Positions 7,001 to 61,996 are shown, numbered from the stretch's first letter. The stretch: 64,000 nt of DNA from Klebsormidium nitens (GCA_000708835.1 DF237156.1:42686-106685); one strand, 5' to 3'. Translations and numbers: made by a program. Notes: generated from the letters alone by a model not told the origin.

Positions 7001-8809
7001 TTTGGCTGGTGCCCCAAATGCTTCTAGCTCCACAGAAGAAGGACTGCCAGAGTTGCTTGGAGTCCGCGCGACGCTGTATATTTCGAGATCTGCATGAAAC
7101 AAAGGTAGGCCGCCAAGTAATGTCATCCTTGTAATCGTAGGCTGCTAGAAATATCATCCTTGTAAAGGTAGGCTGCTAAGTGACGTCATCCTTGTGCAGC
7201 TCGGACTGCCCGTGACGTGGACGCGGGCGAAAGCAGTGGACGCGACACTCGAGGACGTCGCGCGGTGGTGGAGCGCAGCGCCTGCGAAGCTGGCCGGCTT
7301 GAAACGCAAGGTGAGCCAGAAGTCAAGATAAGCGGGCGCTAACACCGATTCATGCCCAGCTGATTTGGAGCGCAAGGTGCACCGGTATCAAAGATAACTG
7401 GGCCCGCTAACACTGGGTTACACTCGAGGTCAAGGTGGTTGGGTGCCTAAAAGTGAGTCATAGTGGTGGGTATGGCTCGGTGGTTAGCGCGCTTGTTAAC
7501 CTTGATGAACGCCCACTTTCCTTACCACCTCTTTTTTGTCCACCTGTTATGAAGTGTTCCGGCGCTGAAGGTTCTGCTGGACGATTTTGCTTACACTTCA
7601 GAGGATCGAGATCTCTTGCACTGATGGGTTCTTGTCAGGTCCAAACCTCTCTGAAAAGGTTCCGTAGTTCTGCGACTTCCGACCGTTAAACACCGCAGTA
7701 CAGGCGCTCTGACCGTTGCAGAAATGTGCTCCGAACATCACTGTGGGAGAAATGTGATGTTGATATCCAGATTCTCCGGCGGACTCAGGGTTGGATATCT
7801 GACTAGACGGATTGCACGTGCGTAATTGTGTGTGTCTGAAAAGGTGGACAAAACTTTTCAAGAAAGAAGTCTGATCTCTGCAGCCCGCAAGGCAGAGACT
7901 TTGTATGCCGAAGCCCTCAGTGAAGCGGCGAAGAGTCGAGCACGACTGAAGCCTTTGTTTGTTTATTGCCGTGCAGGGCTCCATCGAAGCAGGCAAAGAC
8001 GCGGACTTCGTCATCTGGGACCCGGAGGCTGTGTATACCATTACCGAGGACATGATCTATTTCAAACACAAGGTGGGTGACGGTCCACATTCGGACTCAC
8101 TTTCTTGTACCTCGTGCGATTTTTCAGGCTGATGAACCAGCTTGCAGCTCCTAAGGTTCTAGGCTGCTTCCCTGCATTCTCTTGGATTGGCCGAGAACCG
8201 AGGAAGCTTCGTTAGGTGGTGTCAAGCGGATCCGCTCGGGCCGCTTGATGCGCGGGCCGTTCGTTGGCCTGTTGCAAACTGACGGAATACAGAGAAGGGG
8301 AGCCGAGCCGAAAGGCGCCACGAGGCCGTGCAGCACAAACTTGGTGCTCTGCCGTAATCCAACTTCAGGGTCTCTTCTCATGATATTCTTCTGAGATGCG
8401 GGCCTGTTGGCAAGTCGGTTGAACGATTGTGCCGTTGCGCCACCACTGCCTTAGGAAAGCACACAAGCAGATGCATTGCGCACCGTTGGATAATCGTTTC
8501 AGTACTCGGTGCTTGGTTTACCATTTCAATTTCTCATCAGGATGTTAGCGTGCCAACACATTTTTGGTGAATAGCGAAGCTACGGCTCCAATTCTATCCA
8601 GTTCCCCACTGAAGAGGTTGACTTATGTGCGCTCTTTATCTTTTCTCCAGCTGACGCCCTACACGGGCATGGAAGTGAGCGGCAAGGTGGAGCACACTTT
8701 TGTCCGCGGTCAGTTGGTGTTTTCCAAGGGCGAGTTTCCGACTACGCTCTGCGGGCAGCCGATCCTTCAGTTTCCGCACAAGAAGTTCAGGGCAGCGGCC
8801 AGTGCTTGA
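1027..8809 (+). CDS. ALN: Allantoinase (amidohydrolase superfamily), 13 exons, N-terminal hydrophobic signal/anchor
   Basis: Phase-consistent GT-AG exons: 1027-1158, 1655-1736, 2215-2332, 2591-2664, 3206-3282, 3490-3526, 3858-3943, 4762-4818, 5413-5543, 6251-6632, 7200-7310, 7977-8072, 8651-8809. Motifs [76 protein letters not shown] and [11 protein letters not shown] match plant and bacterial allantoinases. In-frame ATGs at 994 and 1003 are alternative starts. Confidence 0.95.
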
Positions 8810-10042
8810 ACGTGCAGTGTGTTTGCAAGTGTAGCTTGTAGGAAATTGTCTAGTATGTACTTAGGTGTTGGAAATGCAGCTGCATTCTGGATCAAGATAG
8901 ATCTGCTTTTGTGTTGCGGAAAGACGGCGGTATTTGACGCCTTGCCGAAGGTCAAGTGTAAATTATGATGCAAGGTGGACTTTGCGCGTTGGTTGTGCAG
9001 CTAAAAATTGGCGGACTGCTTCGTTCGATAAGTTTTCAGCTCTGATGCAGTATCAATGTACATTGGGGATGCTTTGTGTGCATGTGCGAGGAGTACGGTA
9101 CCAATCTATTTAATCAGTTATCGATTTCATGGTACTGGTTGTATTATATGGACGATCATACGTGGGGGCGCGTATTCTTCACTCGAAATTATTCTACATA
9201 TACGGGTACAAGAAATATAGTACGACTATTCGACTCACGCACGACGGACAACGACGTACAGTATAAACCAGACTCACGATCGGATCGACATGGAGCTGAC
9301 GTACAGCTAGGCGAACAAATTCAAATTTGCAATCCAAATTTGCAATCAAAGTTTGCAATCTAACTTATGATCTTACGGAGCATAGCACACATCCGAGTCT
9401 TGAGACAGGTATCATAGTACGATTTTATTCAACGTTCAACCCGCCATGTGATGAACAATTAGTTTTCTACCATGTCCGGAGGCGTCCGCTCAGCATGCGG
9501 AATCGTCCGACGATCCGCGCTCATGCACTCCCTAGCTTCGGACGCGCCCCAGCCAAAAGCATTAACAAGGCGGCGGGCATACGTGGCCAGACGGACTGAA
9601 TGTCAGATTGAATCTCATAAAACGAACACGACCTGTCCGTATGACTCTTTACTGATTCAGAGAACAGTATGCGACTCGACTGCAATCGAAAATTCCATCA
9701 GTCTAAAGATCAAGTCGGATCAAATCTACCCAATGGAATCGTTGCGTTCGTGGTCAAATTGCATCAACGTCTTTGTCAACTAATGCAGTAGACATGGTCA
9801 TATGACGGACGACCTGCCCGATCGGCTCCTGGGGCAGTACGTCGAACGAGTTTCGGCGAGTCTCGACCTGGAGAAAGGGAGAGAAAGAGCACCTCAGCCT
9901 CTGGCCAAGCTGGGGACATCATTAAAGAATAGCGAGGCAACGACCGAGCAAAGTTAAGGAGATTAAGAAGCCACTGGCGTGCAGGCAGACTACTTACATG
10001 GCGCCAAAGCCCTGAGAAAGCAAATGAGAGACCTCCGAAAGG

Positions 10043-11160
10043 GACCAGACGCTTCGTCCCCGGATGTCCGAACAAGGCCTTACATCTTCTTCGAGGAGCG
10101 TAAACGCACTCTCCAAACGCCTTGCCGGCCAGAGCCATTGCAGGTCAGCTGTCTGGGGCCAACAGACAGAAGGCATCGACGATTGAAGAAACTCATAAAG
10201 TCCCACAACAACTTGGCCAATCTAAGGCACATACAGGCAGACTATTTCAAGAGAACTAGGTACGAGAGCTCTAAGAATAACCAGGTACGAGAGGCGGAAG
10301 CCGCACAGCACAGACTACAGCGGATCAGCGCATCATCTTGAAACTTCGAATACTGAACAAAACCAAGTGAACAAAACAAATCGACAGGACCAGACGCGTC
10401 GTCCCCGGATAGCCAAACAAGGCCTTACATCTTCCCTGAGGAGCGTAAACGCACTCTCCAAACGCCTTGCCGGCCAGACCCATTGCAGGTCAGCTGTCTG
10501 GGCCGAAAAAGTGAAGGCAGCGACCAGCAAAAATTCATGAAGTCCCAAAAGAACTTTACCACTTAAAGAGCACTTGCAGTCTGACTTGTTCGAGAGAACT
10601 AGGTACGAGCGCTCTGCACACAACTAGGTACGAGAGGCGAAAGATGCACAGCACAGACTACATAGCGCAGCATCGCATCATTCTAAAACTTGGAAAATTG
10701 AACAAAACCAAGTGAACAAAACAAAAATACAAAGGACCAGACGCGTCGTCCCCGGATGTCCAAACAAGGCCTTACATTTTCCTTGAGAAGCGTAAACGCA
10801 CCCTCCAAATGCCTTGCCGGCCAGAGCCATTGCAGGTCAGCTGTTTGGGCCAACAGACAAAAGGCGTCGACCAGCAAAAACCCATAAAGTCCCAAAACAA
10901 CCCAAAACAACTCGACCACTCAAAGAGCAGTTGCAGGCTGACTTTTTCGAGAAACTAGGTACGAGCGCTCTGCACACAACTAGGTACGAGAGGCGAAAGC
11001 TGCACAGCACAGACTACAGCGCATCATCGCATCATCCTCAAACTTCGAACATTGGAAAAAAACAAGTGAACAAAAGAAATCTACAGGACCAGACGCGTCC
11101 TCTCCGGATGTCCGAACAAGGCCTTACATCTTCTTCGAGGAGCGTAAACGCACTCTCCAA
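10043..11160. repeat. Tandem array, ~345-352 bp unit, about 3.2 copies; three units carry a 69-nt minus-strand exon-like segment
   Basis: Unit starts GACCAGACG(C/G)..TCGTCCCCGGAT at 10043, 10388, 10735 and 11087. On the minus strand: polypyrimidine-CCCAG | TADLQW(L/V)WPARRLESAFTLL(E/R)ED | GTAAGG. Confidence 0.9.
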
Positions 11161-12659
11161 TACGAACTTTGTGAAGAGATTCTTGAGATGCAGGCTGGCA
11201 AGCCGAGTGGGGCTTTTATCAGTGAGTCACAATTCGGTCATGCTTTTGATGCATAATAATTACGGCAGTGCTTGGATTATGCTCTCGCAATTTGAGTACG
11301 TGGACGGTGCGCATGCATTCTCTTGTTGAAACGTCATGCATGTGTATCGTGGCCTCAAGTTAAAACAAGGAATGATGGTTGACGGCGGAGTTGCGATAGT
11401 ATGTCCAATTGACTGGACTCAATCAAACCGACTCAATTGATGATCTGTCGCGTCTCATGCTGATTCGGCGACAGCTTTGGTGGCTGTTCTTTCGCATGTT
11501 GTCAGGCTAGTGACAATTAAAGGTCGGACGTCAAGACCGGATCGGTTGAGGAAGACCTTATATACGTGCATGTACGGTACCGCAGTACCAACTTATGAAA
11601 GATATAAGGAACTTCTCGCGCTGCGACCATCTTCTGCAACCTATCAAGGAAGCATGTTACGCCCTGGGAGGTCATCGCCCAAACATTTGCAAGCATTCGC
11701 TCATGCAGTGAATTCCGGGCCTTCTCCTGATCGTGGTGCTAGGACGATGTTAGCCTGAAATCAGCAACAAATGATTCCTTAAGGTTATTCCTAGCTTCGA
11801 ACATGTAATTTCTCCGCTAAATGCATGGGTCGCCAATATTAGCGAAACGATCAATGCGCTGAGTAAGAAAGAAGTAACAAAAAGCTGAGCCTTTACCCAT
11901 CCTTTACCCAGCCACGTCCACCGGCCCTGAGTCCTTATCACAAGCCACAAGCTTTGCCGGTCGGTTTAACTTAAGGGCGGTACCGGTCTTGAACTATGAA
12001 TCTGGACGCGAGTTAAGAGCGGTGCCGGTCTTGAACGTTACCTGCTTTCATACCGGCGGCGCTATTCATATAGAAGCGGTTTGAGAGCGCCGTCACTCTA
12101 AACGCACATGCTGAAATTAAGGGCGATCTTGGCTGTAATGTCTGGTTTTTAAAATTGGAACGTACTTCAAACGCGCAAATAAAGAGTGCTAAGAACCTTA
12201 AAACAGATTTGAACGGAGTTGGTGGTATTTTTAAAGTGCGGTCCTACACTAGCATAATGTTCTATCTCATTGGGTGCGCCTACAATACTCTCACATGCTT
12301 CTGATAACTCTATTTTAAGCGAGCAAATTGACAAATAGGGGCCTACAGCTAGCGGAGTCCTAACCATAAGCTGCGTAAGTGCTTACACTCTTCACGTCCT
12401 TGGAAGATGACCTCGCCTCGACTGCCTTGCTTTTCCGCAACGCGAGAGAACATGCTCTGATTGTGGATCCATGTTGATGCTCAAGGTCATGTCCTGACCT
12501 GCAGAACATAAAAATTTGCGTTTATGCTCCGAACCAATCAATGCACGTTCGACAAAAGATTTGGACGAAGGTTTGAGCGCAATGGACGGAGCGACCTGCT
12601 TCCTGGAAGTCGTTCTGCTTCACCACTGGCGGAACTCGCCCGTTACTAGAAGTACCGAG

Positions 12660-13115
12660 CAGATATGACGTCAGCAGCTGTTTCAATGTTGCCTTGTATG
12701 CGCGCGTGCGAGAAGGGGCGCGGCCCAAAAAGCCGATCCGAGTCTGCTCCCAGCCACAGGTCGCTCGCGCTCGCAGAAGTACTCAAACGAACATGACGTC
12801 AGTAAGTCCGCGAACGAAGATGACGTCAGCAAAGGCGGAATTCTCTGCAGCGGTTTCGATCGAGCCAGCCCGAGTTCATGCGCGCAGGGGAGAGGCGCGG
12901 CCCAGAAAGACGTCTTGCTCCACGGCATCGGCCCCTCACTCACGCTTGCAAAGCTGCGCAAGCGAAGGTGACGTCAGCTTAGGCGAAAAGGGAAAAGCGG
13001 CTTTGGTCGAACCATTCCGTAATTACGCGCTCGCGGGAGGGGCGTTGCCCAAGAAGACGTTCTGCTCCACGCCCACCGGCCGCTCGCGCTCGCAGAAGTA
13101 CGCAAGCGAAAAGAC
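12660..13115 (-). repeat. Degenerate triplication of a terminal-exon-like segment (FCERERPVGVEQNVFLG-like)
   Basis: Three related ~100-bp GC-rich blocks near 12700-12800, 12880-12976 and 13020-13115. Two are preceded on the minus strand by CTGACGTCA plus an acceptor-like sequence. The third copy has almost all G/C third positions. Confidence 0.6.
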
Positions 13116-15489
13116 GTCCAAGCGCAAACATAACAAGAACGATCTCGGTCAAGCTCACTGGAAATTGGGCACCCGTGGGAGGGGCAACCTGGTTGCGACC
13201 CAGATAATATACGGCCACCGGCTGCTCCCATGAAACACTGCGCAAGTGAACGTGACGGCAGCAAGCGCGGATATGCCACCAAAAATGTCAGTCGAAACTC
13301 CGGCAGACAGAACCCTGCTCAATACCTCGGTCGGCTGCCACCTTCCCTTAGCTGGGTGCCACGAAACGTGGCGACTGTTGAGTAAAGAAACTGAATTTGG
13401 GCAGAGATGGTCGTAGGCTGGTAGCCGCAAAATGGTAGAGAAATTCCACCTAAGTTCCTCAGGTACCGGCAAAAAGAAAGCATTATAAATGTCAAATGAG
13501 CAAGCAGATGGTGCTCCGGTGCTGCATTGGCTGCGGAGGCCAAGGTTTCGAAGAACGCGCTTGAAGCTACTTTGAACTGGTTCACAGAAACGGACTCGCG
13601 GGGGAGAAGAACCTTTCGATTTACACGCAACCTCACCTGTCGCCTTTCCCAGGCTTCCCTCGACCCGGCCCCTGGGCCAGTTGATGACGTCAGTCTTGAC
13701 CGGCAGGTCTCTTACCGTGAGCGTGGATTTGCGAGTAGTCGGTGTAGCCCTTGGACACCTTCCGCCAGGCTGGCGACGTGTCAGTCGAATTGACGATTAC
13801 CCGGTTGTGCTCGTCTCCCAGGGGACCACATCGGTCGGTTTCGTGTAGATGACTCGAGCCACGCCGACAGGCTGAATGAATTAGGGAGACTATTGTTGGA
13901 GACAGATTCTCTATTACTTATACCAAGATCGTTTAATGCTTCCAGAATCGAAGTTACTTGCGACAGAGGCTCTGTTGTGGAATCTGCTTTTCGTCACTCT
14001 TCGATGATAGCAGTGGTAAGAACTTTCAGAAAGAAGACTTTACCTGTTGTCAAGTTACTGAATTCCAAACGTGTCAACACATTCTTGTGGCTGAGAATGG
14101 CACGTCGAAAGAGGGTCCCAGATCTAAACAACCAGGAGGAGTAAGTGCCTAAGCGGCTAAGGGCGCAAGGGACAAACCCGACTCGGAATGTCTCCATGCA
14201 TAGTGTCCAAAGTATGAAAAGAACCTTCAATCGAGGACAGTTCCAGAGAGGCGCGTTCAACGGGTATGTAAGGCTTTGGGAAGAAAGGGTCCGAGCACCA
14301 GGAGCAAGACATTTGGGTGGACAGAGGATCTGGAGAACGAGCACCGGCCAAGCAAGTGAAGACGCTCAAGCCAACAGACCTCTATCAGTGGCAGATGAAG
14401 GTTCCGTTTAGCCGGAACCCTTCAGGCAGATCATTCCGGTCAAATCGTTCCGGATCCACCTTGTGCTGCTAATGGTGAGCTTGTCAGTGCGTTACGGCAC
14501 ACGCCCATGGCTGCATCTGCTGGCGCGACAGGCTCTTGCTGGTGTTCACAACCTCGAGCGCGGGCTTGACTCCTGCCAGATTGATTAGCAACAGCTTGCC
14601 GCAGTGCTGCGCGCGGCCGCCAATTTGCTGGATTGCGCGATGTGTTTTCGATGGAGACCTAGAGAAGGGACACGTGTCAGAATCCTATTGGGAGGAAGAA
14701 ATAGCTGGTGCAGCAAGCACGCAGCCTCCGCTTGCGCCGTCCTGCGCGGTGCATTCCACAATAACCTGCGAGGGGACGGGTTCGGAGGTGAGGGAATGAG
14801 TTGCTGGGGGCGGCAGGCAGGTAGTAAGCCTTTCCAATAGGTGCTGCCAAGCACGTAATTAAAGTTGCACATTTGAACACGTGGCAGGAACTACGCGTCA
14901 GCCTCCAATGGGGGGAGCAGATACTGGCGCTATGAGCAAAGAAGTGCTGCAAAGAAGTGCTGCAAAGCACGTAATTATGGAATGGGTTTGAGAGGGCTAC
15001 TTCCACAAGCTTACTGTGGACTGTTACTGCGGACGGTTTGTTTGAGCAGACGTCGCGTTTCCCGCAACCCTTAAACCAGCATACAGGCACTGCGGATAAC
15101 GGCTGCAACCATGTGACCAACATATGCGAAACGCGGATAACTGCTTGTCCTGATTGCTTCATGAAGGACCCAGCAAAGCCCAAAGGTCACAGAGCTTATT
15201 CTGCAAGAAGTCGAGGAGATCTGCATTGATAAAATAGTCAGGGGCAGTTTGCTGGACAGTGAAATTGCATGGCCTGGTTACAAAGAATGCGAGAATACTG
15301 CGGACAAATCAGAATACTGACCAGTTTCGAAAAGGGGGTCCCCATACTGCGAGAAAAATGGACTTCTAGCAAACCTTTGTGAGCCCAGTTGCCTGTAAAC
15401 GCAGGAGATCAGCTGTTGACGCCAATTAGACGACCTTTTCTACGATCACCAATCTGGATCCCAGCCAAGGTGGGTCCACGAAAGCTTAC

Positions 15490-16327
15490 CAGGAGATTGC
15501 ATTTCCTTCCATACATCAACTGCAGCAACTCAACGCCAATCCATGCAAGGGCTTCCACATGGATAATTCAAGGTCGACAAGGGCACAGTAATGTTGGCAG
15601 CTTACCTGGAGGGCCACGATCACGAAGCCTAGATCCCGCATGCTCCCCACCTCCATGTGCGTCTCTCTCGCTCCTGTGACGCCAGAATTACTGACAGAGG
15701 CGTTGCGGGCCTCCAAGTCCACCACCACCAGGGGAACCACGCTGTGGCAGAGGAACGAGAACCAGTCAAAGTCCGGTTTAAGGGCCTGACTTCAGCAGCT
15801 CATGTCATTGCAATAACACATCTCGGAAGCACCCTTCTTTCTCACTTGTGACTTCTGGCTTGTCCGGCGATCTGATGCCGTAACCTGCTTCTCTTGGCAA
15901 AGCCCTCGTTTTTCCAAACTGAAGCTTTGCTGGCAGATTGCTCCCAAAAAAACCCCGGCGAGAATACCTCATATCTGGTCAAAAGAAAAGCCTGCATTCC
16001 TAACAAGAGTGCTAAAAGAAGCTTCCAATACTATTAAAGAGATGCAACAATGTAAACCATGCAGCATTGTACATGACAGGATGCAAGTTTCAGGGATAAG
16101 ATATATGCTGGTGACGGTATAACTGGGAATCATGTATGATTCAAGTCCTGATGCATCAACAGTTTGACTAATCACTTGCATTTGCTTGAGAGTGACGAGC
16201 TGGTTACTGGCAGAGGTAAGAGAAACACATTTCAACTTGTGTGTACGAGTTTTCAAGTGGTCACACAGATTCAAAACTGTGGTGCGCTCACCTGCACCCT
16301 GCGCTCTGCATCCCCTTGTCCTTGTAC
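15490..16327 (-). CDS. Putative multi-exon gene of unknown function (partial model)
   Basis: Four consecutive phase-0 exons with AG/GT borders: 16292-16327 (VQGQGDAERRVQ), 15968-15991 (AFLLTRYE), 15606-15785 (ALKPDFDWFSFLCHSVVPLVVVDL...RDLGFVIVALQ) and 15490-15519 (LMYGRKCNLL). No family recognised; the gene may extend towards 9800 and 17200. Confidence 0.4.
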
Positions 16328-18640
16328 CTTGCATTTCAGATAATCCATTTTTGTTTAGGAATCTGCATGCCACTAAAGCCCTTGTCCGCAACTGGCACTC
16401 CGGCCTGGGCCTACTTTTGGCATCTGCTGCTGCCACCATTGACACTCTCCAAAGGAGCAGAAAATGCAACCGTGCTGCCTGGTGCCGCCGCTGCAGCACA
16501 AATTGAACATAGAAAAATGGATGTTACTTCTGAGAAGACAAAGCGTTGCGCACGACACGCAGTGTGGCCCACTTTGCAACAAACTTTTTGTGTGAGCTGA
16601 TTATTGAGCTGGGAACTTTGGCAAACTTTTCTTGCTTCAGCCTGAGGCTGCAGTGCTCATGCAGCACTAGGTCCGTACGTAGTGTGCGAGGCCGCAAGTT
16701 TCTGGCAAAGTGTGGCGCACCAACCAAACCCTAGCTCCGTTTGGCAGCCGCGATTAGCATGAGCGTTTCATGCTGCGGCGAGAATTTACAATTTTGACGC
16801 TCCCTCGGAGTTCTCAAAATTGGTTGTAACGTCTATCCCTGCTATGATTTACCATTCATGATTCATCAATTGACATTTCAAATTTTAGACCAAACCTGCA
16901 GTGATACATGCGCAAAACCCTCGCGGGCGCGGTCCAGCCGCCGCACGAACGGCGCGGGGCTGCCTCATCGACGTATAGCGGCCTGCCGCAGCCTGGATTC
17001 AATCATAGAATGCTTTTCTGCTTCGATCAGAAATATCGTCCCAGGCCGGGCCGGCCGGCTGCATTCCTGCAGGCTACCCGCCGCATGGGCCGGTGAGTTG
17101 TATTGCAAGCCAATGCTTGGCGCAGGCTGGGCCAAGCCGAAAACGATACCGATGCGGCACCTAGCTGCCCAGTACTTTCGGGGAGCACAACGCCTCAGCT
17201 GGTCCACGGCGCCCGGGGTGAGAACAACCAATTCTAGTCATTCTAGCACACCGAAGCTTCCATACTGATGTCAGTCTTGTTTGAAGGAGTTGAAAAGCCG
17301 CACTTTACTAAGAGCGGGACCGATCTGAATTTCGTGGTACGTTGTAGGATCGCTTGCGCTCTTAATAAAGAGCTTCACCCGTTTTATAATGAAGAGCGGG
17401 GGCAGCCTGAAAAGGAGACCGCTCGAGGATTCAGTACGTTTCGTACTTGGTTGTCCGGTCTTGACCGCTCTTCAAACGGGTCATGGTTTATAGTATGGAT
17501 CTTTCAAACAAAAGCTTGCGTAGAGACTTCTGAATACTTCAGCCTCCGCTAATGTATCTGCAAAGATCTATCACTTTGCTCCACCCGGCAGGCTCAATGC
17601 GCTAGTGAGTGCCACAAGTCAATGTCTCAGCGGTGGCGTCGGGGGTGTGCTTGTACGTGCTGCGGCACTCATCCGGGTTCATCAGCCCCGCGTGCTCCAC
17701 CGGGTCCCACAGCCGCAGCCGTGACGCTGCAGTACACGAGTAATACACACTGTCAGCCACAACCTGAAGCTGTCAACGCCCGGACCAGTGAGAACAAAGT
17801 TGCTTCAAGGGCTGCTTCTCAAATTGAAACTCCAATGCTTCGCAAAGCCGAGAAGGCCTACGACTGGCCACGACGACCAGGCTCATTTCACAACCGCCGC
17901 CACAATACGGAAAGGAAAGGCTTAAGGCGGCTATATCGAAGGACTCAGCTCTTTGTCGCCGCTCTGAAAAGAAAGGGCTATGCCCAGAATTCGAATCTCT
18001 GAAAGCGGAACCGGAAATGCTGGATACGCAATGCTGGCAGCAATAAATATGCCGGGTGCCTCAAAGCGTGCCGGTCCTGCATCAATGATAGTTTGCGCGT
18101 GCATGGCTTCTGCATATGACGGCGGAAGCATGCATGGGGACTAGTACGATTTTCGACTGACGTTTTACAGAAAATGCATCGTGGCAAAAAGTATGTAGCC
18201 ACGAGTACAATTCCTCATAATCTTTCCCATGCAAACTCTGAAAGCAGTCGATAAAGCAATGTTGAATAAGCTCTGGCCTGAAAAAGCATAGATAACAGCG
18301 CCCCCCGTTTCCCAGGGAGCTGTTCCACTGTTTGCCGAATTGGCAGGGCTTGGCGTGAACATTGTTGCACGGGGCGCCTATGAAGTCAGCACGATTTCGC
18401 TTCCGCCAGCCCTGCTCTAGTTGCTGACTTCAGCCGCGCTCGTCTGTTTCGCCCTGGTTGCTTACGTCTTTGTCGCTCCTTGCCTCTGCTTATGCTGACG
18501 TCAGCGCCGCTCGTCGGCTCATTCGGCTGAGCACGACTGACCCCCCCGGTCCGCTCACGTCAGCCGCGCTTGTCTCCCCCGCTCTTACGACTGACGTCAC
18601 TGAAGCTCCTTTACGCTCCGCTGCTGACGTCAGCGCCGCT

Positions 18641-47811: not shown

Positions 47812-47877
47812 ATGCTGACGTCACGATGTGACGCAAAAATGCTAGATAAGTTTGTAGTTTTAGCCAGTGCGATTCTG

Positions 47878-47980
47878 AGAATTACCTGGGACAAAGCCGT
47901 GTCTCCGTCGGCCAAGTCCGCTTTTTCCGCGGCCGGGCGCCGCCAACTTGCTGGCAACCGTGTGACTGCTGACGTCACTG
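47878..47980 (+). repeat. Downstream duplicate of the CHI-fold 3' end including the stop codon
   Basis: GAGAATTACCTGGGAC..AAAGCCGTGTCTCC...GCAACCGTGTGA..GCTGACGTCAC repeats 47728-47824. Both units end at a TGACGTCA. Confidence 0.9.
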
Positions 47981-49088
47981 TGAGATGGATAACCATGCTG
48001 GTTGGCGCGGATACCGGCGCTTCTTTCCTTAAAGGGGAGCGATTTTGGGGAGTACGTTGCCAGGCGCTGGAATTGTTCGGCGGCTCTTGAGTTTAGTGTT
48101 GTGTGACATGGCTCGTCAGACAAAGTCGATGCAGCCAGCTTAATTTTTGCCGCTAAGAGACCGTACCAGTTGTCAGGTGTTCGGTAATTAAGACCGAGAG
48201 GTGTACGTTATAAAACTTGGAAAGTTTTGCCATTACGATTTGTTATTTCTGAGCATATACAAATCCTTTGCTGGCTTTCAAATCAACCGTGTACTGTGGT
48301 ATACCGGCGCTGAGTCAATTACTCAAAAGCTGGCTACTACTATAGGCGATATACCTACCGGCCCTCCGCATTGCGCGTAAAGTCGGATGCACATGCACGA
48401 ATACAGAACATGCAAATCCGATCAGGGCTTATAGACAGTAAGTACGTTTAAGTGCAGCGGCGCTGCATGTACGGTCCTCCCGGCCATCACGAATTGCATG
48501 CTCCTCAGCGGCCGCCTGGCCATGTTGTTACCGTCCGAAAGCACATGTGTGGAGTCAGATCGACGAGTCATGCATGCCATCCAGTTAATGATAGCACTGA
48601 GGTTTGCTAGCTGCGCGCTGACCGACCTAGCTGCAGCGGATCGCGATTCGACTCGATCATGTGGCGTGCACGTGCCAGCGGCAGAGTCATGCGCACTCGG
48701 TAAAGTGCGACCCCGCATCCTCTCTTGACAGTGACCCTAACCAGACGCAATCCTGTGGCAATGCATCACAGCATGACTGTCGTGACATGCTTGAAAGATG
48801 ATTCTAGGCTTTGAATCCAAGGCGAGTGCGCTCCTCAAGTTTGTCAACGAATGAAACGGACCTCACCGTACATTTTTGCAGAATGGATTTGACGAGCCTA
48901 GTCCCTTGCATACGCTGATACACGACCCCTCAGTGTTTTACCGACTCCGTGCAAGTATCTATGACCTACCATTTCGTGATGCGTTTAGTATCAAAAGAAT
49001 GTTATGCAAAACTCTAGTAAAAATCCCGGACGCCAGCGACCTGTATTCTGTACACACTCAGAACGAAGCCCTTTCAAACACGCGGCGC

Positions 49089-52000
49089 TCACAGCCGCTT
49101 TAATGCCCTTTTCCTATCCACAACCTTTTTCTTGTCCGCTAGTTTCGTGACCGTCTCGCCTTTTGGCTTCTTGGCTGAGGGAGACGAGAGAACTGTGTTC
49201 GGATCCGCAGCCGTGGGTGCACCTGACAAGCAACAGAAATACCAGAATTTAGCTTGGGCTTGAGACCTGACACTTCGCCGGAGCACCATCAGTGTTCCAG
49301 TTTGCAGAAGTCGAAACAGACTGAATCCGAACACAGCCAGTCACTCAAGGAAAGCTCTAACGTACGTTTGGATGGTCCGAGCAGAAAAGCTTGCATCTGG
49401 GAACATAACGTCCGAAAATCCAAAAGCAAGGGACGAGCGAATCAGTGGGACATCAGCAGTAAAGCTTCGAGACTAACCATTGAGCAATTTGAGTAATATC
49501 AAACCGTTCCCAGAGGGGCACCAGAGCGGGCCAGAAATAAGAGAAGAGCGGGACCCGGTAAGGTGGGGCAAACACTACGAACAGTGGGCACAATCCACAG
49601 GGACTCAGGTGATAACGAGAACAGCAGGGCAGGAACAGTATTGTGAGCGCAGAAACAAGGAAAAGGAGCAGAAACAGGAACAACGGGCGGCCAGAACTAC
49701 TTCAAAAAGTAGGGCAGAAAGGACGCACAAGAATTGCCGAAACAGGGGGGCAGACATGACGAAATGTGAACAACTCAGAGCGGGGGCAAGACCAGACTGA
49801 AGCGCTCACCATGAGCGACCCCCTCCGCCGGCGCGCCCGCGTCCGTGTTCGCCGTATCCGTCGACAGGGGGGTCGTCGCCTGCCCGTCCTTGCCCCCCTC
49901 CGTGGCGGATTTCGTTGGCCCCGCCCTCGGCTTGAGTGCGTGGATGCTGGTCAGCAATTGCGCGTGCCGCGAGTAGCCCTCGTAATCCTCCATCAGCATC
50001 TTTCCGGCCTCCTCGTTCAGAGCGGATTCCGGGAACGGCTCGATGAGGAGGCAGCGGATCACGAGCAGGACGTGTCGGATGCCGAGAGTGGGCTTCCAGT
50101 CCTGGAGGAAAGTGGGTTACGAAAAGTGGGTAAGTGAAAATCGACTGCTTTACATATTTTCGACGAGGCTTCCAATCCTCGAGACAAACGGCTGGAGTGA
50201 CTTCAGAAAAGACTGACATAAACTTCTCTTGCTAAAAGGTGTTCTGTTGCTAAAAGAAGGAAGGATGGAGGGACGAGCGAAGGTTCACAGTTCCTGGGGG
50301 ATCTACCTCGAAGAAAACCTATGGAGCTTTCCCACTCCGAAAGCAACATGCGGGATCGCCTGCGGACCAAGAATCAGGGGCAGACTTTGAAATTGCACTG
50401 GACAGCCCAAATCCCTCTCTCTTTCCTGAATGAGATTGACATATTCCTGAGGCACCAAAAGACTACAGTGCAATGTTCTTATCACTGTACTGTAACAAGT
50501 CCAGCTATCCAAGACGGTTGATTGGCCACCAGTGACTGTGACCGACCACAAGTGTTCAGCGTAAGCTGTCAAACATGTTGATGCACAAGGATGCAAGCCG
50601 ATCAACCGTTACTGCCTTTATGCCAATAACAACGGATCTGTAGAATGTAGAGGACTGTTTCTATACCTTTTTGAGCGTGTTGACGCAGATCTCGCCGCTC
50701 TTTGCAATGTTGGGGTGGAAGATTTTCGTGAGGAAGTAGCCCTTGGGGGGAACCTGGGGGAAGTCGGAGCTCAGGACCAGCTTCATCCGGAACACGCCGC
50801 CCTCGTACGGCGTGCCAGCTGGACAAGGAGAAAATGGCAGTGACGTCAGCATTCCGGCCCATCAGGGGTTTCCCCTTTTCGTTGCCCCGTACAGCCTTGC
50901 CGAAATACAAGCGGTGCCGGGGTCATTCTTGTTGCATTTCGAGGGAGAAAAGAGGGATCCCTCTATTCTTATCTTTGTGAAACGCCCATCAACGAAAGTG
51001 TTGGTTAAGAGAGCGAACAGTACGTGCTGAAAATTTTTCGCTTCTCATATCAGCAGCTCATGCCAAGAGTCTGCCCGTGACCGTCATGAAACTCACCGGT
51101 AAAAGACTCGCTTCTCCACCTCGCTCAATCATTCATCCTGAATGTCTGCTGTAGCACTCTAAGTACTCAACTGAAATTGCGAGGCATGTTGAGAACGCAA
51201 GAAGCAGAAGTCCCTACCTGGCCCATCGATTTCTGCCTGGACGTTAGCAAAGTTGTCCTCATTCACGATGATCCGAATCCCTTCCGGGGGCTCTGCGTCC
51301 AGCGACTTGATCTCTTTTGCCAGCTCCCGCATCACTTTGGGGGACAGGTTCTCGTTTGCTCCCTGCAGCATAATGGGGGCGAAACCAATTTAGAGAGGGG
51401 CTCTTTGTTGAAGTAGTTCAGAGATTGGTTCATCCCAACCGAAAGCTCGGAATTTCCAGCCTGCAGCAAGTGGAGGGCTAACATTACCAAAAGGGCTTTC
51501 TCCAATTAGCGGGAAGACCATTTGATACCCAAAGGACAGTTCTTCATTTTCAGCCTGCAAAACAGTCATCAAACACTTCAACAAAAGTTTCACATCCGCA
51601 GCCTGCGGAATGGTGGGGTAACGCCAGGATCGGAAGCGCTGCTGTAGAAGCAGGCAAGAATCTCGCAACAACTCAGTAGAAAGGTTCTCACTAGCAGCCT
51701 GCAGATACTACAGGACAGATTCAGAATAGAAAGAGTTTCAAATCCTGCAACTGAGCCCACCACAAGACAAGGAGAGACCTCGTCGCTGCGGTCAACAATC
51801 CAATATGCAGGATTGCAAAAGGGACCCCAAATATGGGAAGAGAAGAGCCACCACAACCAAAGTAACACGATCATTCCAGCATATAAAAGAGCATAGAGAC
51901 ACATCCGCTGAATTTACGTAAAAAGGGTTGGCACAGGGTCGCAACATCCATGTCCAAAGAGGACGCGGCTGGTTGCTTGGTAAAGTGCAACTGCTCACTT

Positions 52001-53644: not shown

Positions 53645-55643
53645 TGTGTGAAGCGACCCCTCCCTCCCTCTGTGAACGCCGTTGACTGCCCAGCTATGAG
53701 ATCTTTCAGATGTTTAACACCTCGTGTGTGAGAAATCTTAGTTCAGAGGAGCCCACATGCCGCAATAGGTTGCTCTGTCGTCGCTAAGCCTCAGGCTGAT
53801 TCAACCCTAACCTTTGGTTTGATGGGTTCTTTTAAAGGGCAGCAATAAGGTTCACTCGTGTCGATAGGAAGGGACCCACTTATAGACGATCGGTGGTTTG
53901 GTCAAAGCAGTGCTTAGATAGGACCACTAACCAGTCTCAAGGCTTTTCTGCTCCTTCTCTTTACACCATTAGTTTCTTCTCTCACTCTCAAATACATCCC
54001 CTGCCACGCACAGGCTATCGGTTTGTGGCGTCTATCGGGTAAACCAGTATCCTAGATTGACCTTGTGCACTGGTCTCTCCTCCTTCACCCAGCGATCACT
54101 TCTCTGCTTCAAGCTATGCCAAAGAAAGTCAAACCACAAAAAACCGCAGTACCCCCTTTGCGAAACAGCGTAGGAAACACTCCAGTTCCCACGCTGTCCG
54201 TGCCTTGCTCTTCCAAACTTGGAGCAAACTTTGACTTTGTAGCAGCCTTTCCTGTGATGCAGGGAGACCCTTCTCTGATGGTAGGACGGTCTCCTCAACG
54301 CCTGTTCCTGTTGACAGTGTTGTTTGGAGTGTTCCTGTTCCTCATGTCGGTGTTTTAGAAAGCTGACCCCGTGGACTTCAATTTTGAAACTCTCAACCAA
54401 ACGATGTACGTCAACCATTGATAGCCCGTACATTGCGGGCAACTTCCAGCCGTTGACTGTTTGGGACGATGGAAGGCTACTGGCCCGTGCCAGAGTCCGA
54501 AACTTTAGTAGGTATGGTGGCAGTCTGCACCGATCAACGTCCGCAAATTTGGCCGTCCGCAAACCCTGGAAAGCCTAAACCCTGGCTACTCTGAAACAAT
54601 CAGTGCGCCTCCGCGGCCCCGTGCGCATGAATGGCGCATCATATGCCGCCGATGATCTTACAGCGCTTCTGCATAGCACAGATAGCAGAGACGCACAAAA
54701 GCAGCGAGCCAAAGCAGAGCCAGAAGGCGCCGCCTAACCGGCCAGCCCCAGAGTTCCAGTTATTCTGGGCCCTGAGTACCCTTCGAGTACTTCCTTAGGA
54801 GACTGAGGAGGTACTCCACTGGGCCCAGTACTGGTACTCGGAGGATCGGAGCTGGAAAGATTCTGAGCTTTGATAGGTGAGTTTGCGGATACTGAGAGAA
54901 GCTGGAAACGATTGATAATATTACAAGGCAATCATGGACAACTCAACAACTGGTCAAACAGTGGTTTTGTTCTTGCGCCGGATCTGACTCGATTGCCCAG
55001 AAACCTGAAAAGACACCTGCACTTCTCAGGTATAACATGAGGTGTCGACTTAGAAACCGTTCTAGCATTTGAGCGGAAGCTGGTTTCCTTGGCTCCTCAA
55101 CTTTGTTTGTTCAGGTTCCCGACTGTCTTCAACGTTCAGGCTTGCCCATAAATCCAGAATATCACCGGCTAAGTGCATAGTACTTCAGATAACGCGGACA
55201 GTCTTGCGGCACTGATTCAACAAGGATAGCAAGCGGATTTGTTGACAGCAGTTACTACAGACGTCTCAGTCACCCACCAACCAGTGGCCCACCAAAACAA
55301 GTGGAGCTTACATCGACCGGCTCCCTAAGTCAGTGTTCTTTTCTGGCGGGGGGTATTGACGACGATACAAATGACTCAAACGTTCAAACGTTTGGAATCT
55401 CCATAAGCGGACGCAGAATACAGCCTTAACAGCAGTTGCGTCAAGCTGCAACTCCATTAGCCTCAAGCAGGCTTGGATCGCCTCTACTTCATTCCAAAGT
55501 TTAGCTTGCTTTGGTGAACGATCAATCGCAAGCAGGGGGATCGGTCGGCAAGGAATACACAATTGCTGACATCATGCTGATGCTTAGCGGAATCTGCTTC
55601 TGAAACCGCTTACCTTCCTGATTTGCAGAACGGAACGAGAATC

Positions 55644-58600
55644 ATGGCCGGACTTCTGGGTGCCAAATGGCACGAACTCTCGTCAGAGCTTGAAAAGAGA
55701 AGGTCCGGTGAAGGTGGATCTGCCGAATCGGATGATAAGAAGAAGGAGCTCTCCTTTTTAATGAGGCACCTTAAAATACTGGACGTGCGCGCAAGGCTGC
55801 ACGCCAGATCAGGGATCGACTTTGATACACGTTACAAGCACGGGCGCAAAGGTGAGAGAAGGCTCAGCAAATCACAACGGGCCCTGCTCTGGGCAATGAT
55901 GCCATGCAGGCATCGCGACGTTCCTCTTAGGAGTGGTTCAACCAAAAGCACAGATCAAAAGAAAAGAAATGTTCCGGTAGGTGGAAACCCTATTTGTCCA
56001 ACGGCACAAGATCTCGGAAGTTGATGCCGCGGACCTTGGGAAGTGCCTCATCCGTTTGGGTCTCCTCTTTGACATCGTTGATCTGCACCTTCGTCGAAAC
56101 AACTTGAACCCACATCGCCGCTATTTTCTCACGTCTTCTGTTCCGTCCAGAGCGGAGCATCACATTGGGCCCCCATTGCCTAACGAGACCTACTAGCTCC
56201 AAATGGCCCGTTGACAAGTCGACCACTTCTGATCACTTGTCGATCGATATGACACTACTTTATCTTTTGACACAGGTTGACGCCCAAGAAGCACGTACGA
56301 TTGGCTTTTCTCCTTTCATTCATCTGAAAAGAGTTACGTGCTTTTACAACCTTGGGAATAATTAACGATCATTTACTCCTGTCTGACACCCTCTGACCCT
56401 CTTTCTGGCATCTTAAAGTTGCTGTTTTTCGGGGGTGCAGACTTGTGAAGTAGGTAAAAGCAAGATTAATGGGAAGAATTTTGCTGCAAAGCGGACGCAG
56501 GCAGACAACAATCATCATCCTTCTCCTTCCGATTCAGCTTTGCCTTGATTTGATACTGATCAGGTATATCTGCTCGCCAAGATAGGATCGACGTTATGAC
56601 GACTCGACCTCTCTGATACTGATGGCTTCAAATTTCAGACGTTAATCTGACAAACCCATCGGCATGTGTTTTGCAAGGTTCGGGCAAAAGTGAATACCTG
56701 GTTCAGCCACGTGTCATCTGCGAAGATGACACGTGGCGCTTCTTGGGAAACGGCCGCCTCGTGCTCAGCATAGACGTCAAGGACGGGACCTGTAACGCGG
56801 TTCCTGAGCACGTGGCAGTTGCCGTCAGCTGCATTAAACACGCCTGGATCGCGAGTACAGAGGAGCATTCCTCAGATTGGACGCACCATTTTGACCTGAT
56901 ATACAAGTGAATACCTTTTCTCGCTTCCGTCCCTACTTGAAGTGAGGTCCCTTGTTGGGCCTCCGAGCTTCGCAGCGTTCGGATCAACTTGCAAATGTTG
57001 TCCAACAGTAGGAGCAGCATAGAGACTTCATCGCCACAATGATTCCCAGAGCTTTTCAGTGGCATCACATAAGTGATGGCAATGTGATCTGAGCTACTAT
57101 CATTCTTTCGATCAGTTGTTCAACAGTTTCTGTATTCCAGAACGAGTCCAGAACGTTCAATCGTCCTTTTCTTAACCGTCAGCCTACGCTTAAGAGCTGT
57201 CCCTCCCCACATCGTAAAGTATAACAAAGTAGAGTCCCTGCCGAAAATAATTTACGATGAGCACAATAGAACGTTACACCCTAACCCTTTTACTTCTGAC
57301 TGCAGGCTGGACAGGTGCCGGACTCATCAAGCTTCAAGAAAAGGACGCTTTTCCGGACCGCTACATAGACACGATCACCCCTTGGTCCGCTAAAGAGCGG
57401 TGTGACCATATTGCGAAACGGATCCCGTCGGCTCTCGTTTTGTACCGCATGATGTGCCTCTTTCCAACCCTGGATGTGCCGACGGTCGATTGGTACAAGT
57501 GTCTCTGGGACTTCTCATTGAAACACAAAGCGACCGGATTCTTGCTACAGATATGGGAACACAAGGCCGGTTTGCAAGCCAGGGTGAACTCCTATGCTAT
57601 CGTCCCGCTTTAATTCTTGGTCTGAGGTCCTCAGACAATAAGTGCTCACAAAAAAATGAAACGGGGTCTTGGCCAGGCCGAACAGAAGGGCAAAGAGGTT
57701 GTGGCCCACTTTCAGTGAACATTGTGCACCTCGCAAGCTCGTTCCGCTTGGGTAGCAGAGTAGTGCCTTGAAACAGATTTGTGTGGCGAACCTTCACTCG
57801 CCATTTGAATGATATACAGAACAATGGCGCAGCTCTCATCCTCGCATGTCTCAGAAAAATCGACTCGGTATACTTCAAAGAACAAAGACTATGCGCGCCT
57901 CGTCGTTCAGTTCTCTGCCAACACTGCAAAGCAATCTCAGCCGTTCTAACCCTGCCGAGCTTCATTCTCCTGCCATCGCACGTTTATCAAGTTAACATGC
58001 ACTAACCCAAAATTCCGGTTCCGTTCAGATCTACTGGACGGGCAGCCTTGAAAGCCCTGGTCCGGGGCCGGAATGTTTCCAGGCTGACGCGTGCGCGTTT
58101 CTGGAGCTGCTCCTTTCGGACGAGTGCCGGCATCCCTGTGGAGTGGTCGCGGGTTCCATTGATCCTGCTCTTCTGGACACCTGCAGCGCAGCGGCACAAA
58201 AGGTGACCTAAATTTACCGATATTGCACTGCCTTTGAATTTTCTCTCTTGATGTTTTTTACTTCTTGATTTTGCTTCATATTGCGTCTCCCGCGGAAGGA
58301 ACGTCCCAAACGCTGGAATACGTCACACTGCTCAGGGTCATTCCAATGCTTTCTTCTTTCAAAGTTTAAGTGGTGGCCTATTTGTCGCCCCTCGTCATTA
58401 TGACGAGTTGGCTTTCGGAAACACGTAGGCTGGAGAAGGGTGCGACGCTGAGCAGCCAATGAGCAGCTACCGTCGCAAATCGAAAAGCAGCCAAGCAAGT
58501 TAGGACGGCGCGCTCTTGAACAGTAAGTTCTAGGGCTGCCACTTATTCGCTTCAAGTCTTCTCCATGCGCACGCATGTTCGCCCCACCTCTTTCCGCGTC

Positions 58601-61107: not shown

Positions 61108-61133
61108 CGTCCGCAAATTTGGCCGTCCGCAAA
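61108..61133 (+). promoter_or_regulatory. Conserved 26-bp upstream element containing a GTCCGCAAA direct repeat
   Basis: CGTCCGCAAATTTGGCCGTCCGCAAA is identical at 54538-54563 and 61108-61133, while the flanking sequence has diverged. Confidence 0.5.
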
Positions 61134-61234
61134 TCCTCTCAGCCGTCAAAACCCTGGTGCGCCTCCGGCCGGCGGCGCGGTATCTCCAATATTCCATGTT
61201 GCTTTGCTATCCAGTAAGAATAGCGCAGCGCACA

Positions 61235-61241
61235 TATATAA
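61235..61241 (+). promoter_or_regulatory. Candidate TATA box of paralogue B
   Basis: TATATAA is followed ~110 nt later by a G|GTAAGT donor (putative 5'UTR exon). The aligned position in copy A reads CACAAAAG. Confidence 0.5.
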
Positions 61242-61996
61242 GCAGCGAGCTGCATTCACGGACTCCAGGAGCTAGGCGCCGCGTGTCCAGACACTCCATT
61301 GACCCAGTCGGCTCAGCAAATTGCTGGAAGCTGCCGGAAGCATTCAGAGCTGGTAAGTTTGGAGAGACTGAAGAGACACCTAAAAGAATCTTTCCGAAGA
61401 CCGTCTGCAGTAAGATCTAAAGTCCTTTGTTCCAGATAGGTAGATCAGAAGAACGGTGACTGTTATGATTCGCTTCTTACAGCTTTGGCTTGTTCAAGGT
61501 CGGATCAAGTTCTCGTCTTCTGTGCAATGCCATCCTCGGGCCCCTACTACTTGAGTCCAATCAAAGACTGAAATGAGTGCTTGAATCATTGATGTCCTAG
61601 TGCGGCTTTACTGATCCAAAATGAATAGAAAGCAATTTTGCTGCTACTTATTATTGCAGACATCCAGTCCAAAGAAACGTACCAAAGGAACATTGCACGT
61701 TTTGATGGCATCTTTTATCCTTGTGATACAACAAACAACAGCACTCAAGAATGTCGGGATGCTCAGTATCTCACCTGACGCAAACCTTAGCCTTAAGTTG
61801 TGTCAAGCTACACTCCAAAATCCCAAGTAGGCTTTGATGGCCTTTGCTTTCGTCATAGGCTTGCTAAGTCATAAAAAAAGCTGAGCAACAGGATTCGCCA
61901 GGGACTTGACGTCTGCTGACGTCATGCTGATGCTCAACAGAATTACCTGCTTCCGAGAACGCTTGCCGTCCCGATTTGCAGAACGGAACGCTAGTG

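Follow-up and report, generated by a model that had tools for sequence, protein, structure and literature searches.

An excess of the palindrome TGACGTCA within transcription units of Klebsormidium nitens: candidate intragenic bZIP sites

The palindrome TGACGTCA is a textbook bZIP site, known as the CRE/C-box of animal CREB/ATF, yeast GCN4, Atf1-Pcr1 and the plant group D TGA factors. Ordinary bZIP cis-elements are tolerant of half-sites and near-consensus variants and make use of them, and the plant as-1/ocs elements, which are bound by TGA factors, show a spacing of 10-12 bp. GC-flanked forms of the palindrome are the core of Maf-type sites; to our knowledge, Maf factors are metazoan. Transcription-factor sites are also described in exons ('duons'), where a site at the DNA level biases synonymous codons. 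A CRE-like palindrome is preferred by Arabidopsis group D bZIPs and by yeast GCN4, and is thought to be the ancestral target of the bZIPs, an ancient family with members in green algae (PMC10163045). HIP1 (GCGATCGC), in turn, is the highly iterated palindrome of cyanobacteria (PMC4390886, PMC13756078). It is bacterial, occurs about once per kb in a quasi-periodic manner, and is matched by orphan methyltransferases.

Here we describe an excess of TGACGTCA in a 64-kb stretch of DNA (the window) from the green alga Klebsormidium nitens. The 8-bp palindrome is identical to the CRE/C-box, and its copies resemble CRE/C-box and as-1/ocs elements in that the flanks are symmetric and the copies group into homotypic clusters and into doublets spaced by one helical turn. 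The window differs from those systems in that half-sites and variants of the site are unenriched, the copies are intragenic and number about one per 2.7 kb, and codon choice is bent toward the site. With the preferred flanks (G C before, G C after), the extended core equals that of the CRE-type Maf recognition element (TGCTGACGTCAGCA), but the full 12-mer is present only twice in the window and full flanks are found in a minority of the copies. As in duons, a DNA-level site biases synonymous codons, but in the alga the effect is extreme for one exact 8-mer, and the frequency of the DV dipeptide is raised too. Like HIP1, TGACGTCA is a sharp 8-bp palindrome whose count in the stretches studied far exceeds expectation, whose copies occur in coding as well as non-coding DNA, and some of whose sites persist from one species to another (PMC4390886, PMC13756078); unlike HIP1, it is hosted by a eukaryotic nucleus, its density is lower and its distribution clumped, and CpG statistics suggest no methyltransferase link. 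A literature search, whose coverage was incomplete, returned no report of a TGACGTCA excess in Klebsormidium, nor of a nuclear HIP.

Size and sharpness of the TGACGTCA excess

The window contains exactly 24 perfect copies of the 8-mer, from position 7181 to 61917, where 0.9-2.3 are expected from composition over the 64 kb, i.e., an excess of about 10-fold. Dinucleotide shuffles of the window gave a mean of 0.93 copies and a maximum of 4. The Markov expectation per strand was 0.95 at order 1, 2.3 at order 3 and 3.0 at order 4; at orders 5-6 it reached 9-18, because TGACGTCA itself contributes most of its sub-words (24 of the 50 GACGTC and 24 of the 248 ACGT occurrences in the window lie inside it). 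Among all 8-mers of the window it ranked first for over-representation, and the next palindromic 8-mer had 8 copies. After local duplicates were merged, about 16 independent groups were left (Poisson p 3e-9 at 2.27 expected), and the part of the window free of tandem and local repeats still held 10 copies versus 2.05 expected (p 6e-5). The contigs of relatives (114.5 kb) contained 13 copies versus 1.7-2.6 expected; the excess thus extends beyond the window, to related algae. A preliminary description of this DNA had claimed at least 24 perfect copies where about 1 is expected, and an independent count that is lower yet well above 1. Both statements hold, and the excess withstands composition control and de-duplication and is not confined to the window.

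The signal is all-or-none: the exact palindrome is enriched, whereas its variants and half-sites are at chance. One-off variants numbered 38 in the window versus 33.8 expected, CpG-decay (deamination) variants were at background with 3 copies, and half-sites (TGACGT outside the full motif) were found 30 times in the window versus 30 expected; the many one-off and CpG-decay forms described earlier therefore do not amount to an excess. The CpG observed/expected ratio of the window is 0.93. The copies prefer G at -2 and C or G at -1, symmetrically (G C/G on either side). The preliminary description had also reported that many copies were extended, but the full GCTGACGTCAGC is present in only 2 copies of the window, and what exists is a mere flank preference. 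An anchored flank comparison revealed nothing common to the dispersed copies past 2 bases, similarity being restricted to local duplicates, and dispersed repeats were absent from a self-comparison of the window. TGTCCAAG was at chance in the window (58 versus 60 expected at one mismatch). A dispersed mobile element (MITE or solo terminal repeat) was rejected for the window, since the flanks are unshared.

The density of TGACGTCA is one per 2.7 kb in the window and one per 8.8 kb in the relatives. The copies are clumped, with 19 of the 24 in the 24 kb between 12 and 36 kb and none in the 11.8 kb between 36 and 47.8 kb. HIP1-type palindromes, by contrast, are spread roughly evenly or quasi-periodically, with about one copy per kb. 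The presence in both coding and non-coding DNA, unexplained by amino-acid usage, is a feature that TGACGTCA does share with them.

Position of the copies and imprint on coding sequence

RNA and splice support covers 17500-23400 (5.9 kb) of the window, and gene models elsewhere derive from orthologue alignment or reading frame; a Pfam analysis of 30 window ORFs gave DUF642 as the sole match. Two window ORFs and one locus ORF had no exact database match, and the low-complexity exon had no hit by homology. Introns, coding sequence, 3'UTR and a tandem array that is expressed all contain copies of TGACGTCA, and every copy of established context is transcribed. No copy was found within 1 kb upstream of the genes for allantoinase, the DUF642 protein (38.8-40.5 kb) and the CHI-fold protein, whose 5' ends are roughly placed. 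A classical promoter element was rejected, because these three placeable genes lack upstream copies.

Allantoinase, the exons of which were positioned by alignment to three orthologous loci, has an intronic copy (7181-7188) that precedes by 11 nt the 3' splice AG of the exon at ~7200-7310. This copy falls within the third and last unit of a threefold 31-bp duplication (7101-7195) spanning the branch-site/polypyrimidine region, the two upstream units of which carry TAATGTCA and AAATATCA; it is not kept in the orthologous loci L002-L004. A ~147-bp tandem array has four perfect copies between 12666 and 12976 (at 12666, 12794, 12821 and 12969), and degenerate ones at ~13110 (GACGTCC) and 13253 (TGACGGCA). 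TGACGTCA is the best-kept block of this array, whose mean column identity is 53%. Sampled words of the 12560-13330 region were all present in 18 RNA-like runs from several studies, and the array is therefore in mature RNA. Single copies lie at 13685-13692 and 50841-50848, and two others, at 34523-34530 and 35228-35235, fall in proline-rich ORF regions and are putatively coding.

In the long minus-strand gene, three copies (18496-18632) lie in the 3'UTR, as defined by spliced RNA contigs and reading frame. They begin 8 (18625), 41 (18592) and 137 (18496) nt past the stop codon (18643-18641). A 129-bp duplication includes those at 18496 and 18625, and a related organism has extra units of this array. 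In the predicted RNA fold of the 3'UTR the palindromes pair mutually (z -5.0). Intron 19854-20356 of the same gene carries three copies (19872-20052, minus strand): one at 19872, 18 nt upstream of the real 3' splice site, and two at 20034 and 20045, 11 bp apart, within a ~160-bp fossil duplicate of the 3' exon edge of the intron. Three minus-strand coding copies in a disordered region (21642-21775) each encode G-D-V-S (GGT GAC GTC AGC). Those at 21747 and 21768 form a 21-bp in-frame duplication, and this double-motif segment of ~40 nt is common to other transcripts of the same organism. One minus-strand coding exon contains two copies 66 bp apart (26383-26456), read as A-D-V-R (26383) and T-D-V-N (26449), and another contains the copy at 28989-28996, read as M-T-S, which is the sole supported coding copy in that frame. 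On the plus strand, two copies 154 bp apart (47816-47977) mark the end of the CHI-fold gene and its local duplicate, placed by reading frame only, each 4 nt past a TGA closing the frame ..LLATV*. Finally, at 61907-61924 the perfect copy 61917 has the one-off variant TGACGTCT 10 bp upstream; a paralogous gene copy carries TGACATCA at 55567, and the two blocks (55564-55858 and 61914-62211) are 81.5% identical.

Some orthologous sites were retained and others turned over. Site 21768 is kept with identical codons in the orthologue L006, and site 26449 is kept in L006 and L008, within a conserved protein block; at both sites the codons are identical in a species whose introns no longer align. The copies at 26383 and 28989 are window-specific. 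At the former, L006 differs at 4 of 8 bases and in amino acids; at the latter it has TGGCGAGC, with Ser encoded by AGC in place of TCA. In all three lineage-specific copies (3/3), 4 of the 8 bases are unlike those of the orthologue, at an exon divergence of 17-28%. The density of TGACGTCA is gene-specific, and the same gene is rich in two species: the long gene has 12 copies in the window and 5 in its orthologue, where ~0.5 are expected over the whole 20.6-kb orthologous locus.

The supported coding copies of the window and its relatives (n = 12) are read as D-V in 11 cases and as T-S in one, so that both of the exon frames noted earlier do occur, but very unevenly. Asp-Val is spelled xxT-GAC-GTC in 8 of 11 cases in the long gene of the window and in 5 of 5 possible cases in the orthologue, i.e., in 13 of 16 possible cases over the two species, although T-ending codons account for just 11-14% in these genes. 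The DV dipeptide itself is ~4-fold over-represented (8 observed versus 1.9 expected). We conclude that in coding DNA TGACGTCA overrides codon usage, and that the force acts on nucleotides. Amino-acid usage was rejected as the cause of the excess, because DV dipeptides are few and the codons go against the gene's own usage; codon choice is bent toward the motif. The earlier claims that amino-acid usage is not the explanation and that copies occur in introns as well as exons are upheld, the copies lying in CDS, UTR and introns.

Candidate explanations

The best reading of these data, to which we assign a probability of about 0.45, is that the copies are selected intragenic sites of a putative bZIP dimer of the CRE/C-box type. 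In sequence, TGACGTCA is the optimal palindromic bZIP site, and its GC-rich flanks are symmetric, as would be expected of a dimer on duplex DNA. The bZIP reading is favoured because there are homotypic clusters and doublets, a force at the codon level and perfect copies that are kept, and because the density is gene-specific and conserved and the excess lineage-wide. Measured between centres, the doublets are spaced by 10 bp (61907/61917), 11 bp (20034/20045) and 12 bp (16146/16158 in L002). TGACGTCA would be a functional double-stranded DNA site of a symmetric dimer, the likeliest binder being a bZIP protein of the CRE/C-box (TGA/ATF/GCN4-like) type. The Klebsormidium-type lineage would use it within transcription units (coding exons, introns and 3'UTRs) and not in classical upstream promoters, and selection would retain perfect copies and a given number of them per gene. 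New copies would arise by two routes: i) point changes that are synonymous or tolerated, for the most part at Asp-Val codons, and ii) micro- or tandem duplication of motif-bearing segments. We infer that a bZIP protein binds TGACGTCA, and that such binding regulates its host genes or the local chromatin. Three points count against a bZIP site: half-sites and one-off variants are unenriched; no copy lies upstream of the three placeable genes and the known contexts are all transcribed; and a single factor typically has a far lower density of sites than one per 2.7 kb.

A more far-reaching reading, which we consider somewhat unlikely, is that of a true eukaryotic highly iterated palindrome. In Klebsormidium-type algae, tens of thousands of exact TGACGTCA sites would be maintained, with a strength that overrides codon usage and amino-acid sequence, by a genome-wide, sequence-specific conversion or repair bias or by one abundant architectural DNA-binding dimer that marks gene bodies, and the palindrome might provoke the local duplications that multiply it.

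It is unlikely that a HIP1-like process (repair, short-patch conversion or a modification-linked bias) makes or restores the exact palindrome wherever it is tolerated; under such a process, the palindrome need not regulate its host gene. The all-or-none signal, with perfect copies at 10-fold and variants and half-sites at background, is consistent with it, as are the copies across CDS, UTR and introns, the overriding of codon usage and even of amino acids, and the excess in related genomes. The 4/8 base differences in all three lineage-specific copies look more like patch replacement than single change, but these cases are weak at 17-28% exon divergence. Against such a process, the spread is clumped and gene-specific (0 in 11.8 kb versus 19 in 24 kb), the density (1 per 2.7-8.8 kb) is below that of HIP1, neither methylation-linked decay nor avoidance is seen (CpG o/e 0.93, deamination variants at background), and no such process in eukaryotic nuclei was found in the literature. 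The HIP1 analogy of the preliminary description fits descriptively, the palindrome being sharp and found in DNA of both coding and non-coding kinds, while a shared mechanism would be hypothetical. Its proposed link to methylation found no pointer in the CpG ratio or in the deamination variants, and its position-independence was put too strongly, since 19 of 24 copies are clumped in 12-36 kb and the density is gene-specific, the orthologue being rich as well. That the palindrome is too common for transcription-factor sites was an argument rather than a result; the clusters and 10-12 bp doublets resemble bZIP elements.

A role at the RNA level, in which UGACGUCA copies pair within the transcript or bind an RNA-binding protein and thereby act in 3' end formation, stability, translation or splicing, appears quite unlikely. 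Every copy with a known context is transcribed, but this compact genome is mostly transcribed anyway. Nine or 10 copies are in 3'UTRs or in the expressed, non-coding-looking array, and in two genes the first copies lie 4-8 nt past the stop codons. The 3'UTR fold pairs the palindromes (z -5.0), but any repeated palindrome self-pairs in folds, and hence the z-score is not independent evidence. Three intronic copies (7181, 19872 and L002 15201) lie 11-24 nt upstream of 3' splice sites, in the zone of CUGAC-type branch sites, but the motif is present in just 1 of 6 RNA-verified introns of the long gene. A general branch site (CURAY) fits these three copies; it was rejected on the 1/6 introns and because most copies are exonic. 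Furthermore, symmetric flanks around a palindrome mark duplex recognition, not a strand-specific RNA site, and no flank asymmetry is seen when the copies are oriented by the direction of transcription.

Tandem and local repeats make up 9.6% of the window yet hold 14 of the 24 copies and 7 of the 16 independent groups (p 4e-4), and in the same exon of two species motif-bearing segments underwent independent duplications of 21 bp and 33 bp. Micro- and tandem duplication thus preferentially multiplies TGACGTCA-bearing segments. It is nevertheless very improbable that the 8-mer is itself functionless and that local duplication, or a motif-carrying mobile element, accounts for most of the excess: the repeat-free window holds 10 copies versus ~2 expected, on which ground a pure duplication artefact was rejected; dispersed copies share at most 2 flanking bases; TGTCCAAG is not enriched in the window; and duplication cannot yield a codon-level bias at single-copy sites.

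TGACGTCA is therefore a textbook bZIP site with non-textbook behaviour, being all-or-none, intragenic, codon- and dipeptide-imposing in two species, and repeatedly duplicated. Anyone annotating this genome should be prepared to meet TGACGTCA, together with small tandem duplications nearby, in exons and UTRs. Should a repair or conversion process turn out to be responsible, it would represent the first analogue of cyanobacterial HIP1 in a nucleus, and the reason why such palindromes build up, a question of long standing, could then be tested in a eukaryote.

Abundance and distribution of the palindrome

The perfect octamer TGACGTCA occurs exactly 24 times in the 64-kb window, in agreement with the preliminary description, which had counted at least 24 and whose coordinates are confirmed. 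It ranks first among all 8-mers of the window, and the next palindromic octamers reach 8 copies. Dinucleotide-preserving shuffles of the window gave a mean of 0.93 copies (maximum 4), and Markov models predicted 0.95 (order 1), 1.1 (order 2), 2.3 (order 3) and 3.0 (order 4) copies per strand. The expectation climbs to 9 and 18 at orders 5 and 6, a rise that is circular because the motif itself provides most of its sub-words; the window contains 50 GACGTC and 248 ACGT, and the motif contributes 24 to each count.

The excess is all-or-none and specific to the exact 8-mer, since one-off variants and half-sites are at background. The many one-base variants described earlier total 38 (24 variants) against 33.8 expected, and half-sites (TGACGT outside the full motif) number 30 against ∼30. 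The supposed CpG-decay forms are likewise at background, the two deamination variants summing to 3 occurrences, and the window CpG observed/expected ratio is 0.93. GACGTC is flanked by T..A 24 times and by every other pair at most 5 times. Beyond the core the only preference is symmetric: position −2 favours G, and position −1 favours C or G and hardly ever has T. The reported extension of many copies reduces to this preference, the full 12-mer GCTGACGTCAGC being found only twice.

The copies had been read as position-independent. Instead they are clumped, with 1 copy in 0-12 kb, 19 in 12-36 kb, none in 36-47.8 kb and 4 in 47.8-64 kb. As had been anticipated, local duplication lowers the independent count, to ∼16 groups, which is still far above expectation (2.27; p = 3e-9). 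The duplicated copies are 12666/12794/12821/12969 (period ∼147 bp, with a sub-duplication of 27 bp), 18496/18625 (129 bp), 19872/20034 (∼160 bp), 20034/20045 (11 bp), 21747/21768 (21 bp), 47816/47970 (154 bp), 7181 (final unit of a 31-bp ×3 array) and 61917 (with a one-off copy 10 bp upstream). When all tandem and local repeats are set aside, 10 copies remain, where 2.05 are expected (p = 6e-5). Repeats make up 9.6% of the window yet contain 7 of the 16 motif groups (binomial p = 4e-4), hence motif-bearing segments are preferentially duplicated or retained. Selection for extra copies could produce this link, as could template switching triggered by the palindrome or a tightly bound site. Self-comparison of the window revealed no dispersed repeat, and the dispersed copies have no common flanking sequence, so they do not derive from a mobile element.

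Other repeats were also observed. Tandem exon-edge repeats that include the splice site lie inside the adjacent intron at 18964-19740, 19801-20180, 46397-46626, 47186-47983 and 7101-7195 (period 31 bp or ∼140-175 bp, divergence graded); TGACGTCA is present in some and absent from others. Downstream of the allantoinase gene is a 345-bp tandem repeat (10042-11160; 3.2 copies, 83% identity). A tandem gene pair (55564-58000 and 61914-63881) shares blocks of 76-82% identity, and the paralogous counterpart of motif 61917 is TGACATCA at 55567. The enriched 8-mers GAACGGAA and AACGGAAC are due to microsatellite-like CGGAA/CGGAACGAAC repeats (37649-37779), also found at a relative's orthologous locus (L001).

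Genic contexts and codon choice

Spliced contigs from three RNA-like runs define a long minus-strand gene with exons at 22847-22948, 22263-22443, 20853-21968, 20357-20469, 19667-19853, 18466-18813 and 17500-17726, all introns being GT..AG on that strand, and a stop codon at 18643-18641. Alignment to L006, the orthologous locus of a related alga, extends the collinear gene region from ∼32.9 kb down to 19.6 kb. These contigs and the orthologue alignment place copies in coding sequence, 3′UTR and introns, so the reported occurrence in introns and exons stands, with no copy placed in intergenic DNA. The minus-strand coding copies 21642, 21747 and 21768 are each read G-D-V-S in a disordered stretch, and 26383, 26449 and 28989 fall in exons conserved in L006. 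The 3′UTR copies 18625, 18592 and 18496 begin 8, 41 and 137 nt past the stop. Among the intronic copies, 19872 precedes the real 3′ splice site by 18 nt, and 20034 and 20045 lie in a fossil copy of the same exon edge. The ∼40-nt double-motif segment (∼21735-21778) is common to several other, more abundant transcripts, which then diverge.

The spliced intron at 17727-18465 lies beyond the stop codon and is thus a 3′UTR intron, seen in contigs of three RNA-like runs. For the 3′UTR segment 18553-18693, a related organism (B, run X18) has at least 3 tandem units, one with a single base difference and a single gap over 137 nt, whereas neighbouring coding exons differ by 4-11%; this non-coding unit may be strongly conserved. 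A 21-bp Thr/Pro-rich, mucin-like coding repeat (30700-31510; L006 2560-3400) is common to the gene and its orthologue, and explains the enrichment of the 8-mers AACCGGGG and ACCGGGGC.

Elsewhere, alignment to three orthologous loci places copy 7181 in an intron of the allantoinase gene, where it precedes the 3′ splice AG by 11 nt. The best named matches of this allantoinase are from land plants, and together with the DUF642 gene it is in keeping with a streptophyte alga. Every sampled word of the 12.6-13.3 kb array is present in 18 RNA-like runs from several studies, against only ∼35% for the intron-containing 17500-22500 stretch in the same kind of run, which shows that mature RNA includes the array. 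At the end of a CHI-fold gene and at its local duplicate, copies 47816 and 47970 follow at 4 nt a TGA that closes the frame ..LLATV*, as judged by reading frame. Further copies are at 13685, 34523, 35228, 50841 and 61917.

The claim that exonic copies are read in different frames holds for one of 12 supported coding copies (window and relatives together), read T-S; the other 11 are read D-V, and the third frame is a stop. Nevertheless, amino-acid usage does not explain them, as had been argued. The RNA-supported coding sequence (623 codons, GC3 0.75) has 11% T-ending codons (GCT 8/79 Ala, GGT 8/62 Gly), yet 8 of 11 Asp-Val dipeptides in supported exons are written xxT-GAC-GTC. In the orthologue, retrieved via a motif-free exon, T-ending codons are 14% and 5 of 6 dipeptides are the perfect motif, the sixth being preceded by Trp, whose codon is unable to end in T. 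The following Ser is AGC or AGT, not TCN. Asp-Val is itself in surplus (8 against 1.9 expected in the 623 codons). From this codon choice and surplus we conclude that a nucleotide-level force molds synonymous sites and, where tolerated, protein sequence.

The motif in related algae

Eight loci (114.5 kb non-redundant) were collected by protein homology from Logan assembly SRR23617307 and two JGI metagenomes; they align with the window in exons only, at 65-88% identity. The excess is not confined to the window: the relatives have 13 copies where 1.7-2.6 are expected (p = 3e-8 to 3e-6), and TGACGTCA again ranks first among palindromic octamers. The ∼5-8-fold excess is thus lineage-wide, and motif density is higher in the window, or in its species, than in the relatives. 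The ACGT-core palindromes CCACGTGG (11 against 1.7 expected, the counts being non-independent since some copies share one orthologous exon position) and GGACGTCC (10 against 2.2) are enriched in L002-L007; the window, with 3 and 2 copies, shows no such enrichment.

The 20.6 kb of L006 contain 5 copies of TGACGTCA, each within an exon of the long-gene orthologue. Site 26449, in a conserved protein block, is perfect in L006 and in a further relative (L008), and 21768 (GDVS) is perfect with identical codons in an exon just 49% identical in protein. Site 21666 is one-off in the window (PADVD) and perfect in L006 (PADVS). At 26383 and 28989, L006 differs at 4 of 8 bases with changed amino acids, as the window does at L006 site 8750; 21642 is alignable only at the protein level, and the amino acids differ. 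Small duplications added copies independently in both lineages: 21747 (21 bp) is absent from L006, and L006 14403 (33 bp) from the window. Sites are thus partly conserved and partly turned over, and the gene has a similar motif load in both lineages.

Possible origins of the excess

Plant group D bZIPs and yeast GCN4 favour TGACGTCA, a CRE-like site held to be the ancestral bZIP target (PMC10163045). The exact palindrome and its symmetric flanks point to a symmetric dimer that recognizes duplex DNA. We tentatively propose, with a probability of roughly 0.45, that the copies are putative binding sites of bZIP-type dimers, under selection and used within transcription units. The clumping and conserved gene-specific load, doublets spaced 10-12 bp, perfect copies kept within diverged arrays and identical codons at orthologous sites are consistent with selected sites. 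Against them stand the very high density, the lack of any excess of half-sites and variants in the window, and the absence of TGACGTCA from the 1 kb upstream of the allantoinase, DUF642 (38.8-40.5 kb) and CHI-fold genes. These same three observations would suit a HIP1-like process of repair or conversion that generates the palindrome, HIP1 being the iterated palindrome of cyanobacteria; the uneven distribution of TGACGTCA and the lack of a methylation signature make such a process rather unlikely. A role at the RNA level, suggested by the 3′UTR positions and by pairing of the palindromes in the 3′UTR fold (z −5.0), is improbable, because such pairing is expected of any repeated palindrome and the symmetry favours DNA. 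Duplication alone is very improbable as the source, given the single-copy excess and its failure to explain codon choice.

Full-text literature searches found no report that TGACGTCA is in excess in Klebsormidium or in any other streptophyte alga, and none that describes a highly iterated palindrome from eukaryotic nuclear DNA. Although the motif is well known, its HIP-like abundance as a bZIP-type palindrome and its imprint on codon choice appear to be new.
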